Part shown: positions 11,041 through 64,000 of the stretch, one piece after another | How positions within the stretch are numbered: the stretch's first letter is position 1 | Layout of the letters: each line of letters opens with the position of its first letter | Source: Octopus sinensis | Lineage: Eukaryota | DNA: 64,000 bases | Reading direction: 5' to 3' | NCBI RefSeq assembly: GCF_006345805.1 | Contig: NC_043013.1 | Coordinates: 24,676,001-24,740,000 of the forward strand | The notes under the pieces: model-generated | Told to the model about the DNA's origin: nothing | Databases searched by the model: none | What the model saw: only the letters and a program-made list of their open reading frames with translations | Program-made: the position numbers and the translations under genes

Positions 11041-14000
11041 TGTGGCATAGTGTTGAATGACGTTGATAGATGGATACTGTCTTCACCTAATATGAAACAA
11101 TACATCTTAATTGTTGGACAGCTGTGATTAACGGATTAGACGTTGAGCAGATATAAAGTTTGAATAAAAGCCTCCCTTGAACTAGCTAATGACAAATTTT
11201 ATTCAAGGTCTTTCCCAAACTTTATTATAAATGGATGCTAAAGTGTTTGAGAGGACCCTACCAAGCGACCTGACTAAGGAAGATTATTGGAGGTACCCTT
11301 AGTCCTTTGCAGAGCAAGGATCTACCCCATCGTGGAAGAATTTGAAACCATCGAGGTGGCAGTAGAACACCTGGACTCAAAGTTCATAAAGAAAAGTTCA
11401 AATATAATGATGCACCATAAACTACGAACTTGAAAACAAAAGGAAAAAGTGTCTATAGAAGAATTTATGTCAGGCCTTCAGGTGCTGGTCAAGAAGTGTA
11501 AAATCCCAGCCCTAATGGCAGACCGTTCCTGAGAAATTCTAATTGGTGATGCCTTTGTAGCTGGACTTCAATTACCATCAATCAAACAAAGGCTTCTCAA
11601 GTAATCAAACGACAGCTTAGAAACACTCTGTAAGCTTGCTCAAACCATGGAAGTGGCCATTGAAGACACTCGCAACCTATTGCAAGGCTCAGCTGGTATC
11701 GATCAACCACTAAATCAGCATGCTTTTGGTGCGGTGGAGACATCCATAAAAAAAATCAATGCCAGGCGAGAAACCGCACTTGCAAAAGGTGTCAGAAGAA
11801 TTGCCACTGGGAGAAAGTCTGCCTCTCAAAAAAACCACCAAGAAACAAATGTAACTTCCCTAAAACAGCAGCTATCACAGAGCCCCAGAGTGACTCAGAC
11901 AGTGGTGGGACCTTATCATCCATCACTTTAGCAGTAACAAACAGTACAGGATGGCTGGTACCCATTGAAATTAAGTACAACAATATACAAGCCATTTTCG
12001 ACAGGACATTTATAAAAGCGAATTATCTTGAGGTCTGGGGATTACACTATGATCGTACCTGGCCAGAAAAAGTTAACTTGACCAACAACACAATACTGGA
12101 GATTAAATGCAAATTCAGTAGTAAACTACAACTGGGAAATAACACATGTAACACTAATTTCCTTGTAGCTCCAGTCATAATCAGAATCAATATATTCAGT
12201 CAACACTCAGCAGTTGCAATTGACTTCAGGACACACTCAAACCTGTGTCATTCTGCCTGTCCATGTCAAGCCTAACATGTCCTGCATATAAACTGCTTCC
12301 TGGCATTGAGACCTCTAAGCTCAGACCAATTACAACTTCAAGACGCAAAGTTTATTAAACAAAAATAGACAAGTTACTTTCAGAGGACATAATTCAGGAA
12401 AGCTGTAGTCCTTGGTGAGCTCATTGCTTTGTGACATCTAATGGAGAGGAAAGACTGGTGATCAACCACTTGAATACTATAAATATCTACACACAACTGG
12501 ATGCCTGCCCTACCCCACAGATCAATGATCTTCTAAATGAAGTAGCAGCAAACAAGGTTTTCAGCAACATCGATATGACAGCTGCATATCACCAGGTGGA
12601 ACTCCTACCCAAAGACTATAAACTGACAGCATTCGAAGCAGGGGGGAGATTGTATGAGTTTAAATGCCTCCCATTTGGTTGCACCAATGCTGCAGCAATT
12701 TTTCAGTGTCTCAGGGATGAATTCATAAAAAGAAACAATCTTCAAAAAGCCTTTTCTAATCTAGATGACATCATCATAGCTGGCAAAATCATCATGAACA
12801 TGACGATAACCTCAGGAGATTTATCCAGGCAACTGAAACATCTGGCATGACCATCAATAAGAGCAAAAGTCAATTCTTTCAGAAGCATATCAGCTTCCTT
12901 GGACATATTATTGGAAATTCAACTATAAAACCTGACCCTAAAAGGTATCAAGCTTTGCTAGATATGTCAGAACCAAGAATATTGAGAGAATTAAATCGAA
13001 TAATAGGAATTTTTGCATATTATGCAAAGTGGATACCTAAGTGTTCCGGACTCACCATTCCACTTACAAGAGCCAGAGAGAATATCAACAAAGCAGGACT
13101 GCCAAAAGAAGCAAAAACAGCAATCACATCTTTCAAGACTGCATTGGTAAATGCCACTGGAATATCACTTCCTATTGAAACAGATGCTCCTGACCTAGCC
13201 TTGGGATGTATGCTATCACAAGGAAGGCCAGTGGCCTTCTATTCAAGGTCACTTTCAAAATCAGAAAAACACCAATCCATTGTCAAGAGAGAAGCCTGTG
13301 CAATCATAGAATATTTCCACAAATGGTGCTACCTAATACATGTTTTCTCATACTGCAACATCGTCACTGATCAATGCTCAGTGGCAATGATCTTCAATAA
13401 GCAAGTGACTTCAAAAATCAAAAATGAAAAACTTATATGCTGGTGCTTGGACCTCTCAGACACAAATTACACAATCTCTTACAGACCAGGAACTCAAAAC
13501 AAAGCAGCAGACGCGCTATCAAGATGTGCAGCAACAAGAGACACTACAACACTAATAACCTTTCACAAACAACTGTGCCACCCAGGAGTGACCCATCTAC
13601 TTCACTACTGCAAAGTACAAAACTTGCTGTTCTCCCTCAATGAAATCTGCAAAATGACGTCAATTAATACAGGTATCGAGACCTTGGGAGCACCTCTCCG
13701 ACTTTGTTGGTCCCCTGCCATCAATCACACAATACCACCACTTATTGGTAGTAGTCATTGAGTACTTGAGGTACCCTTGTAAAGACATGAGTACCAAAAC
13801 AGTCATTTCCCACCTGCTCCACTTCTATTCATCGTTTGGATCATCAAGTTGTATCCAATCTGAAAGAGGAACCCAATTTCAGGACTTCTTTCACGTTAAT
13901 GGGATAATAAAAACTAGAACATCTTTCTATCGACCTCAAGGCAATGGCCAATGTGAAAGGACCAACAGTACCTTCATGAAGACCATAAATCTAGCACTTA

Positions 14001-14430
14001 GTTCCCTACAACTAGATAATGGACACTGGTTGACAGTTCTTCCCATTGCACTATCAGCCATGAGAGGAGTCCTTTGTACAACTGCCAACACGACCCCACT
14101 CCATGAATGAATGTTTAAATTTTCAAGATCGTCGATAGTGGGAACCATTCTACCTGAATCCCTCCAGAATACTAGAAGTACAATACTGCATTGTCAACAT
14201 CTCAGAAATAAAGGGTATCCACTTATAGAAAACGATAAATTGTTGGAGATGATTTGTTCCCACTTTGCATACGTACAATTTGGAAACAGACGAATAGATA
14301 CAGTGTCAACACACAATTTTGCTCCAACAGGACAATCTTCCAATCAAGGAAGCAAAGGTAATGCACAAACACAACCAGTGCCAACTACACAGAGTTTGAT
14401 ATGGAACAAGAAAATCCACAAATAATAAGT
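11041..14430 (+). mobile_element. Degenerate Ty3/Gypsy LTR retrotransposon in SPG11 intron 1
   Basis: Gag remnant (DAFVAGL; Zn-knuckle-like Cys cluster near 11760), RT (IDMTAAYHQV, LPFGCTNAAAIFQ, NLDDIII), RNase H (ETDA...VAFYSRSL), integrase (QLCHPG, RPQGNGQCERTN) in RT-RH-IN order, with stops and frameshifts. TG...CA segment with AATAAA at ~11041-11193 may be a 5' LTR; no matching 3' LTR seen. Confidence 0.9.
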
Positions 14431-16034: not shown

Positions 16035-16325
16035 GTCTTGAACTATTTAAATCTACTGCACCTTATTTACTTGGTTATGCACACTCTTCAGTTATTTTAC
16101 TTACCAAGAAAAGGCCAACTAATTGCCAAGCTAGTTCTGATGTCATCACTACTACTACTACTCTTACCATAGCTTGTGTGTATTTTACCAGTGAAGCATC
16201 ACAGAAACCCTGCTGTCAGTACACTATTGTATTATCAGACCAATTTGAAGAGGATCATATTGTGCCATCTGTTCAACTTTATGAGTCAACTATATCTGTT
16301 CTAGACTGGCCACAACACACACTTT
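16035..16325 (+). CDS. SPG11: Spatacsin exon 3 (GLELFKSTAP...SVQLYESTISVLDWPQHTL-Y)
   Basis: Acceptor ttttaaacAG|; open frame includes an (ACT)5 poly-Thr; ends at T|GTATCCTTTT (U12-type donor). QLYESTISVL aligns with recalled human QLCRGILFVL. Confidence 0.75.
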
Positions 16326-24639: not shown

Positions 24640-25147
24640 AAGCCGAGTGAGACTATAGTCATGACCAATGCCAGTGTCTTGTAACTAGCCTGTTAAAAGC
24701 ACCCTTCACTCATTCGGCAATATACTGTGCTTGTGAAGACCTGTCAAAGTGAAATCATAGCCGTGGCCAATGCCAGTGCCATCTGACTGGCATTCATGCT
24801 AGTGGCATGTAAAAGGCACGGTTCAAGTGTTGGGCCTCTTGTAGGCTGTGAGAAGTGACCAAGACTTTTGACAATATACCGTGCTTCCAAGCCAAGTGAG
24901 AACGTAGTTGTGGCCAATGCTGGTGTCAGGTCAATGGCACCCTTGCCGGTGGCACGTAAAAAACACTCACAATACTCTCAGAGTGGTTGGCATTAGGAAG
25001 GGCATCCAGCCATAGAATCTTTACCAAATCAGATTGGAACCTGGTGCAACAACCCCACCCCCACCCTGGCTTACCAGTCTTCAGTCAAACCATCCAACCC
25101 ATGCCAATATGGAAAGTGGACATTAAATGATGGTAATGATGATGATG
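24640..25147 (+). mobile_element. RTE 3' UTR repeat copy upstream of exon 7
   Basis: Modules, then gagtggttggcattaggaagggcatcc...tail. Confidence 0.75.
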
Positions 25148-25326
25148 AGAATACATTAGAAAAGTAAAACACTTGCCCCAGCAGTTCCCAATACACACAT
25201 TTCCAGAAGTGCCTACACCACACAATTCATACAATAACCAAAATTTAACATACATTCTGCTAGTATTTAGATTTTGTTACTAATTAAAAGGTCTTTTTTA
25301 ATGAGTGTATAATGTATATTTTTCAG

Positions 25327-25763: not shown

Positions 25764-25842
25764 GTAAGACCTTTTACTTCAGAAATCTGATTATGAAATA
25801 TAGTTTATTCAAGAGAAACCATCCTTCTCCTCCTCATTCATC

Positions 25843-26215
25843 ATCATCATCATCATCATCATCGTTTTGAGTCCGCTTTCCATGCTAGCATGGGTTGGAC
25901 GGTTCAACTGGGGTCTGGGAAGCCAGAAGGCTGCACCAAGCCCAGTTTGATCTGGCAATGTTTCTACGGCTGGATGCCCTTCCTAATGCCAACCACTCCA
26001 TGAGTGTAGTGGGTGCTTTTTACATGCCACCTGCACAGGTGCCAGACGAGTCTGGCAAACGGCCACGATCGGATGGTGCTTTTTATGTGCCAGGCGAGGC
26101 TGGCAACGGACACGAACGGATGGTGCTTTTTACGTGCCACTGGCACGGGGGCCAGGCGAGGCTGGCAACGGACACGAACGGATGGTGCTTTTTACATCCA
26201 CTTTCTATGCTGGCT
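25843..26215 (-). mobile_element. RTE 3' UTR repeat copy downstream of exon 7
   Basis: (CAT)n, then ctttccatgctagcatgggttggacgg..., then modules. Confidence 0.8.
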
Positions 26216-27497
26216 TCAGTTGGGTTGGTTGTTATGATCCAATAAGATTTTATCAGGAGTTACTTGTCTCAACCTTGTTTTATGCATATTGCATTTTGGC
26301 TTGTGTTCTGCTACTGCATGCTTTTCCCATCACTAACGATTTTACAGAGTGTCCTGGGAGCATTTTATCATGATAGCTCAAGTGAGATTTTTATGTTCTT
26401 ATCAAGACCAAAAGTCCTCTCCATGCTATCAGTTTTTACTGGTTTGTTAAAAGTTAGCAGATTGTACTGGGTACATTTTATCATGGCACTAGGACCAGAA
26501 TGGTTCATCTATCATCTCTTATGAATGTCCACATCTCAGAGGAGTGAAGACTTTTTACTCTTGCAGCATGTATGGCAACAACGTTTTGTTAATGCCATGA
26601 TGGAGAATAAAAGAATGATGGTAGAGATAGCACGACTGGGATGAGGAGGAGAGAGAAAAAAGTAGACAATGGTAGGATTAAGTGATCTATAACAATAACA
26701 AGTGAGCTGGAAGAAAATGAATGACTTATTGTCAGTAGAGAAAGGATGATTGTAGGATATGCTTAGTTCAAATAGATCTGATGCAATCCCTTATGAATAG
26801 GTACCAAACCATCCATCATTACATGGCCAGTATGCAGTACACAGGAGATGTATGATATGGAGATGAGAGAGATAACAGATGTGGACTTAACAGCAGATAT
26901 ATTATGCCATATATATTACACCTCTTAACCGCCATCACTACCACCATTTTTAATGTTCAAGTTTACGTTTGCACAGTTGTTGAGTCTTCTGCAGTTCTGT
27001 ATATTAACAATCAACACATTCATTTATCATCTCCTTTGTGTAGTGCAACATTTTGAGATCCGTCTGCATCACTTCATTTCAATACATCAATTCTGAAATA
27101 CTCAAAATATCTATTTTCAATTTTCTTCATTATTGTATTTCATTTATGTAGGCCCTCACAGACACTGACTTATGTTCAGAAGATTGCAGTTATTTGTAGA
27201 AAGATGGAGAAAAGTATTTATTATAGAATTTGGGAAATAAAACACTGCAGGATGATGAAAGAGAACAGCTGGTACATCAAATAAGTTTGTGCAGGGGTAG
27301 TGCATAGCTTGTTCATTGAGAAAATCAGACAATGTTGTAGCAATAGGAAAATCAAAACAGATCCCTCCCTTTACTTTCAAACTGTTCATTTTTGGGCTAG
27401 TTACTGTCATCACTAAACTCTTCAATCTTAAATGCTCAATACTTTCAAGTTGTATATTCCATCAACATGTTAAATTTTTCTCTTATTTTTATTTCAG

Positions 27498-29550: not shown

Positions 29551-29822
29551 AGATTCGCCTGGTCCTCGTGCCGGTGGCACATAAAAAGCACCATCCGTTC
29601 GTGGCCATTTGCCAGCTCTGTCTGGCACCTGTGCGGGTGGCACGTAAAAAGCACCCACTACACTCATGGAGAGGTTGGCGTTAGGAAGGGCATCCAGCCG
29701 TAGAAACACTGCCAGATTTGACTGGGCCTGATGAAGCCTTCTGGCTTCACAGACCCCAGTAGAACCGTCCAACCCATGCTAGCATGGAAAACGGACGCTA
29801 AACGATGATGATGATGATGATG
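29551..29822 (+). mobile_element. RTE 3' UTR repeat copy upstream of exon 10
   Basis: Well-conserved copy with (GAT)n tail. Confidence 0.8.
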
Positions 29823-29855
<33 letters not shown>

Positions 29856-29908
29856 GAGAAAGATTTTCTTAAAAATTAATATCATGACTCATTTCAATTT
29901 CCTTACAG

Positions 29909-33657: not shown

Positions 33658-33745
33658 TAAATCAGAATGATTCTGTAAAGGTACCTTCTTAATTTCATAA
33701 ATATAAATATTATTTATAAGCGTACATTATTTCTTCAATTTCTAG

Positions 33746-33965
33746 CAGCTGCTCCTGTCCAGAATGTTCCTCCCAGTGTCATGTGGGAATACTTAGTCAG
33801 CCACAACCGGATTGATGCTGCATTAAATTGGTTATTTGAACATATCAGTTCGAAAAAGGAATTAGTAACACCACCTGATGATATTTCTTATCAACAAATT
33901 TTTCATATTGTAAAGACTCATGGAACAAACTATCTCCAGGAATTGGTTCAAACTTTACTAGCAGC
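33746..33965 (+). CDS. SPG11: Spatacsin exon 11 (AAPVQNVPPSVMWEYLVSHNR...QELVQTLLA-A); alternative start 33749
   Basis: TAG/CAG tandem acceptor; MWEYLVSHN resembles human LWRYLTARHD; donor GC|GTATGT; phases 1 to 2. Confidence 0.85.
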
Positions 33966-40519: not shown

Positions 40520-41510
40520 CTAGGGGAATTATCTGAAAGTGTGGCTGTTAGAATAAGAATATCCTGGGCAAAGTTCAGAGAGCTCCTACCTCTGCTGATG
40601 ACAAAAGGCCTCTCGCTCAGAGTAAAAGGTAGACTGTATGATGCATGTGTGCGAACAGCAATGCTACATCACAGTGAAACATGGGCCATAACTGTTGACG
40701 ACATGCGTAAGCTTACAAGGAATGAAGTCAGTATGCTCCGCTGGATGTGTAATGTCAGTGTGCATACACGACAGAGTGTAAGCACCCTGAGAGAAAAGTT
40801 GGATGTAAGAAGCATTGGATGTGGTGTGCAAGAGAGATGAATGCACTGGTATGGTCATGTGTTGCAAATGAATGAGGACAGCTGTGTGCAAAAGTGTCAT
40901 GCCCTAGCAGTAGAGGGAACCTGTAGAAGAAGTAGACCCAGGAAAACCTAGGATGAGGTGGTGAAGCACAACCTTCAAACATTGGGCCTTACTGGGGCAA
41001 TGGCTAGTGTCCGGGACCTTTGGAGATATGCTGTGCTTGAGAAGACCCAACAAGCTAAATGAGACCATAGCCCTTGGCCTATGCCAGTGGGTGTAACTAG
41101 CCCATTTATGAATACCCTCATTCATTAGACAATAAACCTTGCTTATGAAGACCTATTGTGGCAAGTGAAATCGAAATCAAAATCAAAATCACTGACATGG
41201 CCAATGACAGTACTGCCTGTTTAGCACTCATTCCAGTGGAACGTTAAAAACATATCTGAGCGTGATTGTTGCCTGGGCCATGGATTGGCTCCTGTGCTGG
41301 TGACACATGAAAAGCACCATTTGAGCGTGATCATTGCCAGCGTCACCTTACCAGCACATGTGCTGGTGGTTGGTGTAAGGATGGACATCCTGCTGTAGAA
41401 ACCATGCCAGATCAGATTAACCTGGTGCAGCCTCTTGCTCACTAGTCCTCAGTCAAACCGTCCAACACATGCCAGCATGGAAAGCGGACATTAAACAATG
41501 ATGATGATGA
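40520..41510 (+). mobile_element. RTE-clade LINE 3' portion (RT C-terminus, 3' UTR, GAT tail)
   Basis: RIRISWAKFRELLPLL..KGLSLRVKGRLYDACVRTAMLH.SETW runs directly into the abundant repeat ending catggaaagcggacattaaa(gat)n. Confidence 0.85.
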
Positions 41511-43662: not shown

Positions 43663-44442
43663 GTAAGTAACTGAACTAATATTTTGCAAATTTGTTAAAC
43701 CAAAGAGTTGTTGTGTTCATTCAGAATCACAGTCAAAAAGTTGGAGATTACAAGGTGAGGTTTCAATATTGACATGTTAATCGTTGAAAGTAAAAACTTG
43801 GAAAATGTAATATTGTGAAAGAAATGTGGTTCTACATAAGAATGATGGTCAAGTTATGGGTAGAAAGTTACCATGTTAATTATAGAATAAGGGGTGATTG
43901 TCATAAGTAGATTTATGTGGAAGTGACATACAATTCACAAACTGAGAGAAGAGACTACTACAGTACTGTTTGAATGGACGGAAGGACACAACAAGTTGTG
44001 CCATAGTTTTACACGTGAAGACTGACATGTTGTATCTCAAGCATCAACTCATAGATGCTGTCAGGTGTGTTTGTGTTGACAATAGAAAAGGTGGATCGTA
44101 TTCTTCTTTTATTCTGTATACATGGACAGTCTTCTAATGTTGGGTAGATTTCAATTTATTCAAAGGTCAACAACCGATAAAAATTAATTGACAGTTTTAA
44201 AAAGAACACCTACTCTATACAATAAAGGCTTGGCTGTGTGAACACTACATGACTGGTATGAGTGGTTGTTAGATATTTGAAACTCTGTTAGTTTTGTAGA
44301 CTTTGAGAGTTTTAAGTATACATAACAAGAAACTGTGCAGTGTTATGTGTTTTTTGTGATGATTGTTATTGATTGGGTACTGTTGGATGATACTAAGTTG
44401 ACAAGTCCAAGTAAACTCACTTTTGTTTTGCATCTTATTTAC

Positions 44443-45385
44443 ATCATCATCATCATCATTTCACATCCGTTTTCCATGCTAGCATGGGTTGGACAGTTCA
44501 ACCTGGGTCTGGGAAACTAGGAGGCTGCACCAGGCTCTAGTCTGATCTGGCAGTGTTTCTACAGCAGGATGCCCTTCCTAATGCCAACCACTCCATGAGT
44601 GTAGTGGGTGCTTTTTACGTGCCACCGGCACAGGTGCCAGGGGAAGCTGGCAGCTGGCCACAATCAGTTGGTGCTTTTTACGTTCCACCAGCACAGGTAT
44701 CACAACTACAATTTCCATTTGATATTTATTTTGATGTTGATGCACTTGACTCAATAGGTCTTCTCAAGCACAGCAGGTCACCCTACAATCCAAGGTAAGC
44801 ACAGCAGGTCATTCTGCAATCCAAGGTACTTTGGATGGGCTGGGGCTGCTATGCGAAACTGGTGCAGAAAACAGCCATGAACTCACATTATTTGTCGAGT
44901 CTTTGCAGTCACAGCATATCTCCAGAGATCTCGGTCTTTTGTTATTGCCTCTGTGAGGCCTAACATTCGAAGGTCATGCTTGACCACCTTATTCCATGTC
45001 TTCCTGGGTCTCTCCCCCCGGATTCCTTCAACTGTTTGGGAGTGGCACTTCTTCACACATCTCTCCTCATCCATCCATAGTACATGACCATACCAGCGCA
45101 AACGTCTCTCTTGCACACCACATTCGATGCTTCTTATGTCCAGCATTTCTCTCAGGGTGCTGACACTCTGTCATGTGTGCACACTGACATTGCACATCCA
45201 GCGGATCATGCTAGCTTCATTTCTTTCAAGCCTACGCATGTCCTCTGCAGTTACAGCCCATGTTTCACTGCCGTGAAGCATGGCAGTTTGCACACATGTG
45301 TCGTACAATGTACCTTTCACTCTGAGCGAGAGACCCTTTGTCACCAGTAGGGGTAGAAGCTTTCTAAACTTAGAGACAGTTAATG
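44443..45385 (-). mobile_element. RTE-clade LINE 3' portion
   Basis: KFRKLLPLLVTKGLSLRVKG..., ERRLRWYGHV, then the same 3' UTR and (CAT)n tail on the + strand. Confidence 0.85.
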
Positions 45386-56931: not shown

Positions 56932-57185
56932 CATCATCATCATCGTTTAATGTCCATTTCCATGCTGGCTTGGGTTGGACGGTTTGACTAGGGTCTGGCA
57001 ATGTTTCTACAGCTGGGTGCCCTTCCTTAAGCCAACCACTCTGAGCGTGTAGTAGGTGCTTTTTACGTGCCACTAGCACAGGAGCCAGACGGGTTGAGGG
57101 GCTGGCATCAACCACATTTGGATGGTGCTTTATACTTGGCACTGGCCACGTTCAGATGGTGCTTTTTACGTGCCACCGGCACATA
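56932..57185 (-). mobile_element. RTE 3' UTR repeat copy
   Basis: (CAT)n, conserved body and modules. Confidence 0.75.
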
Positions 57186-57784
57186 GGTATGTGTGCCTAT
57201 GTGTATATATCAATATCATCAGTTAACATCTGTCTTCTGTGTTAGCATGGCTTGGACATTTTCATAGGATCCAACAAGTGAAGCTGGGTCAAGAGTAGCA
57301 AGGCTGAGAGAATATCTATCTTCGTACAGACTACATATAGTTAAAATAATTATCAAAGGCATGGCACTGTGTTCATATTCTATTTTAATTAGACTTTCTT
57401 GGCTCACTACAATATGACTTTACCGTGATATACGTGTGCATCACATCACTTACATTGTATACTTAGGTCAAAGTGTAAACCCTTTACATGTAAGTTTAAA
57501 GACATCTGTTCGTTGTCAGCTGAAACAAAAGTTAATATTCAAGCAAGTTACTCTACAGGATCCATTTGAACGAGCAAGATAATAGTCATTCATTCTGTTT
57601 TGGCATTTGCTTCTGAAAAGTTTCATGTTTTGTTTAAATAATGTAAAGCACATGTTCTCTCTCTCTCTCAAGCATTTCTTGTATCATTTATACTTAATGA
57701 GGATATTGTCTCCAGCGTAAGCTATATTTTCTGTGTCTGTTGCTGTAATTTGATACCTTTTTTCCCATTGTGTTTTGTGATTAG

Positions 57785-57893
57785 GTCAGTTGTTAATGGG
57801 CTGCCTTAAACGAAAACGGAATTCAGCCTCAGAGCTGCTCAATACTTTAGAAGATGCTACTGAGTATGACATTGAAAAGGAAGAAGTTTCACC
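57785..57893 (+). CDS. SPG11: Spatacsin exon 19 (QLLMGCLKRKRNSASELLNTLEDATEYDIEKEEVS-P)
   Basis: ELLNTLEDAT resembles human ELLVLLEEGT; canonical sites; followed by an 88-nt intron. Confidence 0.9.
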
Positions 57894-57981
57894 GTAAGTC
57901 TTATAGTAACTAGTTTACTCTCTTAAAAGTAACTATTTATTTAAGAATTTGTTTATGATATTTTGTTTCTTTATTTTTTAG

Positions 57982-58141
57982 TTTTGGTTTCGAAGCCGGT
58001 CATTTATGGACACAATCTATTCTATTGTGTTATCATCTTCATCTGCCTTACTCTACTAGATTTCTTGAGAATTGTGCCAAAACCAATAACTGGTTACCAT
58101 TCCTTTGGTTTGCACAGCTGCACCAATATCCCAAAGATCAG
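57982..58141 (+). CDS. SPG11: Spatacsin exon 20 (FGFEAGHLW...FLENCAKTNNWLPFLWFAQLHQYPKDQ)
   Basis: Matches recalled human YLRECAKANDWLQFIIHSQLHNYH; donor CAG|GTAAAC. Confidence 0.95.
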
Positions 58142-63000: not shown

Positions 63001-63028
63001 CTAAATATTATCATCTCATTCCTTTCAG

Positions 63029-63223
63029 CTTTTACAGTTAGTTCCATGGTTTCCTAGTCCTCATCTTCGAGATCACATATTCTACATTGTAAATAATGCT
63101 CAAAACAATCTTTTCACTGAGACTGAAGAGACAACTACCAAAACTGACTCGGATATGAAAAAACCTGCTACAAAAGCATTTCGTTATGGTTTTTATAGCA
63201 AATAGGAGTAGCTTCTGACACAG
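63029..63223 (+). CDS. SPG11: Probable spatacsin exon 21 (LLQLVPWFPSPHLRDHIFYI...); 3' end uncertain, in-frame TAGs at 63203 and 63209
   Basis: Acceptor cctttcAG| in phase 0; FPSPHLRDHI resembles human FSPVIQDHL; frame open to 63202; best donor is CAG|GTTAGT at 63223/63224. Confidence 0.6.
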
Positions 63224-64000
63224 GTTAGTCAATGCCTCTGTTTATTAACTTTATAAATGTAATCTCTATATGCCGAGTTGGGTAAATCTGTAAATTTTAA
63301 ACACCTGTATGAAATCTTGGCATTCATAGTTTGACTGTAGAGTAAGAAGTAATCTTCTGGTAAGCTAAGATTGCAACAGGATTTTAATTGAAGTCATTTG
63401 GGCACTCTGTTGCTATTTCACTTCATTTATGCTGTTAATTCCCTAAAGAAAAGCGTATGTATCATAATTCTTATAGCCTAAAAAATAGAAAAGTTTGATG
63501 GCTAATTATTTGTTGAGTGGAAATTCACATATATTTGAACTTGTTTTTCTAGTTATGTTCCTTAACTAAGCACAACATATTTTCTGCAGGACTAAACCAA
63601 CTTTAACCTATTATTTCAACTCTTCTCTAGTGCATGATTTACAATTAATATCACTAAATACATTTGATTTTACTGTTTTTATCTGATCACATTTTATGTG
63701 TTATTTTCTTTATAAAGATTTATTTGGTGTAAGCATTCTTTGTAATAAAACTGAAGAGAAATTATATCAATATTTGAAATGATACCAATATTTTAATACC
63801 CTGTGTAATGAAGATGACTATAATAGTACACTAAATGATGTGCCAGATTTGTCTCATTTTGCAAGGTCTTAAGCTTAAATCCTATTGGCATTAGTATTGT
63901 TCTTCAAACATCAGAAGATTTATCTGCAAAAAGTACCACCAATATATTAAGACCATTTCTACCATCTTGAGGGTTTATCTATAGACTAATACATTTTAAA

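Follow-up and report, generated by a model that had tools for sequence, protein, structure and literature searches.

Results

A spatacsin gene extends across the window and beyond it

The sequence analyzed in this study (here called the window) is a stretch of 64,000 bp from Octopus sinensis that agrees with chromosome record CM016875.1 of assembly GCA_006345805.1 at every position (0 mismatches/64,000 bp); the chromosome coordinate of any base is 24,676,000 plus its window position. The RefSeq protein XP_029646985.1 (1417 aa) threads exactly onto the window and is reproduced completely by 21 exons with GT-AG introns (Table 1). Several lines of comparison identify the product of this gene as spatacsin, the protein whose gene is mutated in human SPG11 spastic paraplegia. 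A tblastn search with residues 1 to 1582 of human spatacsin, checked against PDB entry 8yad chain B, returned nine collinear, uninterrupted exon matches in the window, in which exons 6, 12, 14 to 18, 20, and 21 follow human residues 500 to 1421 in order. The human structure itself (8yad chain B, 2443 aa) was matched at residues 500 to 561 (E = 1e-12), 1245 to 1335, and 1343 to 1409 (E = 7e-7). Exon 20 (FGFEAGHLWTQSILLCYHLHLPYSTRFLENCAKTNNWLPFLWFAQLHQYPKDQ) aligned with human residues 1338 to 1395 by tblastn, with E values of approximately 1e-6 to 8e-5, and was also matched in the PDB search, and the WFPSPHLRDH segment of exon 21 aligns with YF-SPVIQDH of the human protein (residues 1394 to 1401).

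An HMMER search of a representative protein library returned 294 spatacsins, which are at or near full length across a wide range of animals; the best match was an Octopus bimaculoides protein with 92% identity. The cluster formed at 90% identity contained O. bimaculoides proteins of 2495 and 2496 aa, Octopus vulgaris proteins of 2497 and 2377 aa, and four O. sinensis fragments. The Spatacsin_C domain (PF14649), which is present in the full-length O. vulgaris and O. bimaculoides proteins, was found in XP_029647168.1, a protein encoded on the same chromosome outside the window. On the basis of the collinear homology and this C-terminal domain, the gene is the octopus orthologue of spatacsin (SPG11). 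Human and octopus spatacsins differ in the segment at human residues 1410 to 1440, which is not conserved and in which the octopus protein carries a long insertion.

In O. sinensis, the remainder of spatacsin is annotated as two fragments located downstream on the same chromosome, XP_036366245.1 ("spatacsin-like," 436 aa) and XP_029647168.1 (327 aa), and a second N-terminal isoform is recorded as XP_029646986.1 (1416 aa). The fragments are identical to O. vulgaris spatacsin at 1415/1417, 424/424, and 327/327 residues, respectively, for XP_029646985.1 and the two downstream proteins. What RefSeq records as three models is a single gene in pieces.

Table 1. Positions of the features described in the text (window numbering)
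Feature	Position	Strand	Basis or remark
RefSeq CDS of XP_029646985.1	9037-63205	+	Exact threading; stops at first TAG
Fragment of retrotransposon pol, intron 1	12419-14422	+	PF00078 and PF17917
Coding exon 3	16035-16325		Thr run
Tandem acceptor of exon 11	33743-33751		tctag/CAG/CTG
Coding exon 19	57785-57893	+	Threading; aligns to human residues ~1290-1335
Intron between exons 19 and 20	57894-57981		88 nt
Coding exon 20	57982-58141	+	Threading; phase-0 end at CAG/GTAAAC
Coding exon 21	63029-63223	+	195 nt; phase-0 acceptor to strong donor
Possible cryptic 109-nt intron within exon 21	63089-63197		GTAAAT...TTTTTATAG
AAA run with one-base deficit	63200-63202 (CM016875.1:24,739,200-24,739,202)	+	Frameshift-tolerant alignment
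Out-of-frame stop triplets, TAG GAG TAG	63203-63211	+	Conserved frame (A)TA GGA GTA G, Ile-Gly-Val
First TAG	63203-63205	+	Direct reading
Second TAG	63209-63211	+	Direct reading
Donor GTTAGT	63224-63229	+	Direct reading
Intronic ATG, MPSW start	63270-63281		ATGCCGAGTTGG/GTAAAT
Short interspersed repeat, copies	~1600-1990, 24750-25230, 25810-26370, 29600-29890, 41300-41440, 44415-44800, 57030-57240, and others	Both	Alike pseudotranslations

Exon 21 contains two stop codons before its donor

Exon 20 ends in phase 0 and thereby sets the reading frame at the start of exon 21. The acceptor of exon 21, tcctttcag/, lies at 63028/63029, and the exon starts with CTTTTACAG. From there the frame is open for 58 sense codons (LLQLVPWFPSPHLRDHIFYIVNNAQNNLFTETEETTTKTDSDMKKPATKAFRYGFYSK) and then reads AAA TAG GAG TAG CTT CTG ACA CAG/GTTAGT; the XP_029646985.1 model accordingly has the C terminus ...KTDSDMKKPATKAFRYGFYSK and ends at the first TAG. 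The initial annotation had described this open stretch, the TAG-GAG-TAG that closes it, and the 195 nt leading to the GTTAGT donor, and all of these were reproduced from the letters of the window. The deposited letters at CM016875.1:24,739,197-24,739,206 are AGCAAATAGG; the two in-frame stops are genuine letters of the O. sinensis reference genome. The pattern TAG-x-TAG-Leu-Leu occurs once among the 7,731 stop triplets in the window (both strands, all frames). Searches yielded no protein derived from a transcript, a scan of JGI metagenome contigs with the exon 21 peptide gave no match, and exact look-ups of two spurious minus-strand open reading frames overlapping exon 21, made in search of independent octopus contigs, found none on record.

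Immediately after exon 21 lies an intronic ATG (Table 1) that provides the MPSW start of XP_036366245.1. The first residues of that model, MPSWLLR, are absent from the orthologues, and they look like the product of an invented first exon that was forced by the broken frame.

Other spatacsins read the site in a different frame

Full-length orthologues are available from O. vulgaris (CAI9735249.1, 2497 aa) and O. bimaculoides (XP_014770524.1 and XP_052830059.1, 2496 and 2495 aa), whose genes span 114 kb and 109 kb, respectively, and the 21 exons of the window are collinear with the O. vulgaris protein, to which exon 21 is identical at 58/59 positions (residues 1360 to 1418). At the end of this exon, however, both species read ...FRYGFYSK-IGVASDT-G-QSSSDEDD... 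in a single frame (...YSKIGVASDTGQSSS... = ...FRYGFYSKIGVASDTGQSSSDEDD...; the flanks of the junction are KKPATKAFRYGFYSK IGVASDT G QSSSDEDDALIINSNKEE), whereas the window reads YSK-stop-E-stop-LLTQ and is one base short. When the O. vulgaris peptide ATKAFRYGFYSKIGVASDT was aligned to the locus by a method that tolerates frameshifts, a single one-base deficit was found, at the AAA run: the window has AGC AAA TAG G where the orthologous S-K-I-G requires AGC AAR ATA GG. The addition of one base in this mononucleotide run gives AGC AAA ATA GGA GTA GCT TCT GAC ACA G and restores the frame that is conserved in the relatives. The candidate restored sequences with four A's are AGCAAAATAGG and AGCAAGATAGG, and the corresponding O. 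sinensis cDNA would read ...AGCAAAATAGGAGTAGC....

The conserved frame is not peculiar to octopuses. In a MAFFT alignment of 13 spatacsins together with the human sequence, the motif R-x-x-[LF]-Y-x-[KR]-[IM]-G-[VL] was present in most of the invertebrate proteins, for example, as RSSLYAKIGLAK, RTLLYARIGVAP, and RSFLYSKIGLQK; only the vertebrate-like sequences do not have R-x-x-[LF]-Y-x-[KR], and there the whole segment is missing. Since most of the aligned invertebrates carry [KR]-[IM]-G-[VL], the Ile-Gly-Val frame is the conserved one. None of the relatives has a Trp residue at the codons homologous to the two TAGs.

The phase of the next exon requires the conserved frame

A search of positions 63225 to 64000 for a candidate next exon found none. 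In the extended locus (L001), which reaches 9.2 kb past the end of the window, the next exon was found at 65216 to 65290, equivalent to window positions 64252 to 64326 and thus 252 nt beyond the window; its protein sequence is 100% identical to that of O. vulgaris. This exon starts tttag/GG CAA AGT AGT TCT GAT GAA GAT, and a phase-1 junction is therefore needed. A phase-1 end of exon 21 (...GAC ACA G/GG CAA...) yields T-G-Q-S-S-S-D-E-D; in frame 0, the same exon would read GGC AAA GTA GTT CTG ATG AAG ATG ATG CTT TAA, in which GKVVLMKMML is cut off by a stop at codon 11. One of the explanations offered in the initial annotation, a missing base that would give SKIGVASDT and a phase-1 end, agrees with both the orthologues and this exon; the acceptor that it had proposed as partner, at 63717 and reading D-L-F, is not the one used, since the real exon lies at 64252.

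The resemblance of the exon 21 tail to a human motif is not upheld by alignment

The tail of exon 21 in frame 0, stop-E-stop-LLTQ, resembles human W1455-H-W-L-L-V-E, a correspondence that is ruled out by the orthologues, the phase of the next exon, and a multispecies alignment. In that alignment, the human sequence DLFEILL...SWHWLLVEAV...ISCLCVWII pairs with octopus EDVFRVIF...SVWKSLLSYG...LSCLCGWLI, which is encoded by exons at L001 68691 to 68840 and from 70306 onward. The octopus counterpart of the human DLF is therefore EDVF, one exon past the next exon. Based on these alignments, the likeness of TAG-GAG-TAG to human W-H-W-L-L is a coincidence.

Two further places in the gene disagree with the O. 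vulgaris protein

Apart from exon 21, the exons of the window are all intact and flanked by GT-AG introns, and the merged locus (L001, L002, and L003; 128.5 kb) also contains most of the downstream spatacsin exons, in open frames. The O. sinensis sequence disagrees with the O. vulgaris protein at two more places, the start of the RIPSLVAPIDEIF exon and the exon for residues 2112 to 2163; apart from these two local irregularities, the rest of the gene is without sign of decay.

The former place lies outside the window at approximately 85,415 to 85,445 of the merged locus (CM016875.1 approximately 24,760,450 to 24,760,480). Here, XP_036366245.1 ends ...KVPKVERIVDLHY-stop (...ERIVDLHY-stop), whereas O. 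vulgaris continues as ...KVPKVERIPSLVAPIDEIFLGVEETYP; the bases encoding IDEIFLG... (IDEIFLGVEETYP) follow in another frame, with no AG acceptor before them, and approximately 13 nt are found where 18 would be expected, adjoining a (CT)n run. At the latter place, all that can be recognized of the O. vulgaris exon for residues 2112 to 2163 (LNSPSSVCNDLIFNPIAGGESYQILQLCQDPSQLGNRLLDAVASLASDTSQD) is an exact match of 11 residues, QLCQDPSQLGN, lacking splice sites, at approximately 98,385 within merged-locus positions of approximately 98,300 to 98,460 (CM016875.1 approximately 24,773,340 to 24,773,500); the rest of the exon is missing or garbled.

Discussion

A one-base deficit and its probable origin

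One base fewer, in or beside the AAA run, knocks exon 21 out of frame, so that the conserved ATA GGA GTA GCT TCT GAC ACA G (I-G-V-A-S-D-T, phase 1) is read as TAG GAG TAG CTT CTG ACA CAG. The two stops are almost certainly by-products of this deficit and without function. The deficit in turn most likely arose from a single-base consensus error of the assembly and not from a mutation in the animal; the RefSeq predictor followed the assembled letters, producing a 1417-aa model that ends at TAG and fragments of 436 and 327 aa. Taken as a whole, that is, a frame broken by a one-base deficit that is itself an assembly consensus error, this account is in our judgment probably correct, and its last step is the one that we infer.

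The O. sinensis assembly was presumably built from PacBio continuous long reads, for which the typical residual error is a deletion in a short homopolymer. Against an assembly error, three to four A's make a short run for a mistake of this kind; with AAG as the Lys codon, the base that was lost could instead have been a G. The two further irregularities suggest that the consensus is locally poor, and three local defects in an otherwise perfectly conserved gene fit a poor consensus better than they fit biology. However, the other two defects are not simple one-base indels, and they could equally be read as real gene decay.

Alternative explanations for the stop codons

The deletion may instead be real, in which case the sequenced O. 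sinensis animal would carry a germline spatacsin frameshift, heterozygous or fixed, leading to a truncated 1417-aa protein or to nonsense-mediated decay. The deletion is present in the deposited sequence and was left uncorrected by RefSeq, and the two further irregularities at the locus could be early decay; however, 751 annotated residues downstream of the site all match O. vulgaris, the other exons that were detected have open frames, the frame is retained in both O. vulgaris and O. bimaculoides, and spatacsin is full length or nearly so in many animals (the 294 matches noted above). The identity to O. vulgaris is weak evidence of constraint because the two species split approximately 2.5 million years ago, compared with 34 million years for the other frame-keeping species, O. 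bimaculoides (PMC10700109). We regard a real deletion as unlikely, although it is the most probable of the alternatives. Slightly less probable still is the more specific case of a natural germline frameshift allele that is tolerated when heterozygous or is circumvented in part through excision of the cryptic 109-nt intron. The initial annotation had allowed for a real nonsense allele or a truncated paralogue; the allele is the unlikely case just described, and the paralogue does not fit the remaining exons, which lie at this locus and match O. vulgaris throughout. It can also be envisioned that the sequence is correct and that the stops are spliced around, either from the weak donor at 63088 (ATT/GTAAAT) or by removal of the cryptic intron. 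With 109 nt excised, the frame changes by one base, and the product, ...FYI-QIGVASDT-G, regains phase 1 and joins IGVASDT to the next exon; in addition, GTAAAC and GTAAAT donors are used elsewhere in the spatacsin gene. Such a splice would nevertheless remove 36 residues, including the conserved R-x-x-[LF]-Y-x-[KR], and the models of both orthologues, like the O. sinensis RefSeq model, retain the whole of exon 21. Use of the donor at 63088, which had been put forward earlier, is therefore unsupported, and splicing around the stops by either route is very unlikely. The shift that is needed, which is -1 and exactly at AAA-T, could come from programmed -1 ribosomal frameshifting or from slippage during transcription of the A's. 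However, AGC AAA TAG does not match the X XXY YYZ slippery heptamer, polymerase slippage takes far more than three A's, folding revealed no significant downstream structure, and the relatives encode the conserved frame directly; of all the explanations considered, we give this one the least credence.

The most striking proposal in the initial annotation was that ADAR would convert both UAGs to UIG (Trp) by A-to-I editing, giving W-E-W-L-L. In its full form, this explanation would yield W-E-W-L-L-T-Q, a restored conserved WHWLL motif, and a full-length protein. The UAG triplet is preferred by ADAR. Both stops are UAG, coleoids edit heavily, and TAG-x-TAG-L-L is rare in the window. Editable in-frame UAG stops exist in coleoid transcriptomes and have been treated as Trp by published pipelines (PMC8382921), under the harm-permitting model, G-to-A changes are permitted where editing takes place (PMC6881472), and fungi fix premature UAG stops through editing (PUK1, PMC4817773; PMC10776026). 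A weak exon-intron hairpin, in which positions 63201 to 63210 pair with 63233 to 63242, was also predicted (pairing probability of approximately 0.6, z-scores of -1.0 to -1.9); however, the z-scores of the folds (-0.5 to -1.9) are not significant, and a search of the window for sequence complementary to the site returned just the site itself, with neither inverted repeats nor folds reaching significance. The decisive objections come from the gene itself. Frame 0 does not carry through the next exon, where a stop follows 10 codons, so that conversion of both UAGs to Trp could not give a full-length protein; the orthologues have I-G-V, and not W-x-W, at the bases of TAG GAG TAG; and the octopus counterpart of human W1455-H-W1457-L-L in the alignment is V-W-K-S-L-L, which lies two exons further downstream. 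A semiglobal alignment put WEWLL on WHWLL (human residues 1455 to 1459) only if each stop was counted as Trp. The site shares two UAGs, an open frame, a conserved gene, and a heavily editing host with known amber/W recoding systems, such as the hepatitis delta antigen, fungal PUK1, and coleoid "stop-loss" (PMC4817773, PMC8382921); unlike in those systems, recoding of exon 21 would leave the next exon closed, and the relatives have no Trp. The UAG context is the one testable feature of stop-to-Trp recoding that the exon 21 site displays. A literature search found no paper that links cephalopod spatacsin with editing, and the supplements of PMC8382921 were searched for a spatacsin entry and contained none. 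The next-exon stop, the I-G-V of the relatives, and VWKSLL as the true counterpart of WHWLL refute the editing proposal, which we consider extremely improbable.

Consequences for annotation

The stops in exon 21 of the O. sinensis reference are artefactual or, at the very most, represent a frameshift allele, and no new biology is indicated. If the deletion is real, the reference animal would carry a natural frameshift allele of spatacsin. For curation, one conserved 2,497-aa gene has been split into three RefSeq models, with the first break at CM016875.1:24,739,200-24,739,202, and surveys of editing, pseudogenes, or gene loss that use the O. sinensis assembly would score the site as a premature or editable stop. 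The case also carries a warning, in that a once-in-7,731 pattern at about the right distance mimicked a human motif and was undone by the orthologues and the phase of the next exon.

Other features of the locus

Smaller features were recorded elsewhere in the gene (Table 1). The tandem NAGNAG acceptor of exon 11 explains the two RefSeq isoforms X1 and X2, which are one Ala apart (SQAAAPV versus SQAAPV). In exon 3, O. vulgaris has one Thr more than the window (ITTTTTTLTIA versus ITTTTTLTIA), and this in-frame 3-nt difference in repeat length reflects a real polymorphism or else a further difference in consensus. At 88 nt, the intron that separates exons 19 and 20 is exceptionally short, the other introns in the window ranging from approximately 120 nt to 6.3 kb. 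Scanning the window for Rfam families and tRNAs gave no matches. Intron 1 holds a fragment of retrotransposon pol, with reverse transcriptase and RNase H domains spread over several frames, that appears to be a decayed LTR-type element, and the introns contain many copies of a short interspersed repeat, on both strands, with alike pseudotranslations (...HASMGWTV..., ...GHPAVETLPDQ..., and ...CFLRATGTGAR...).
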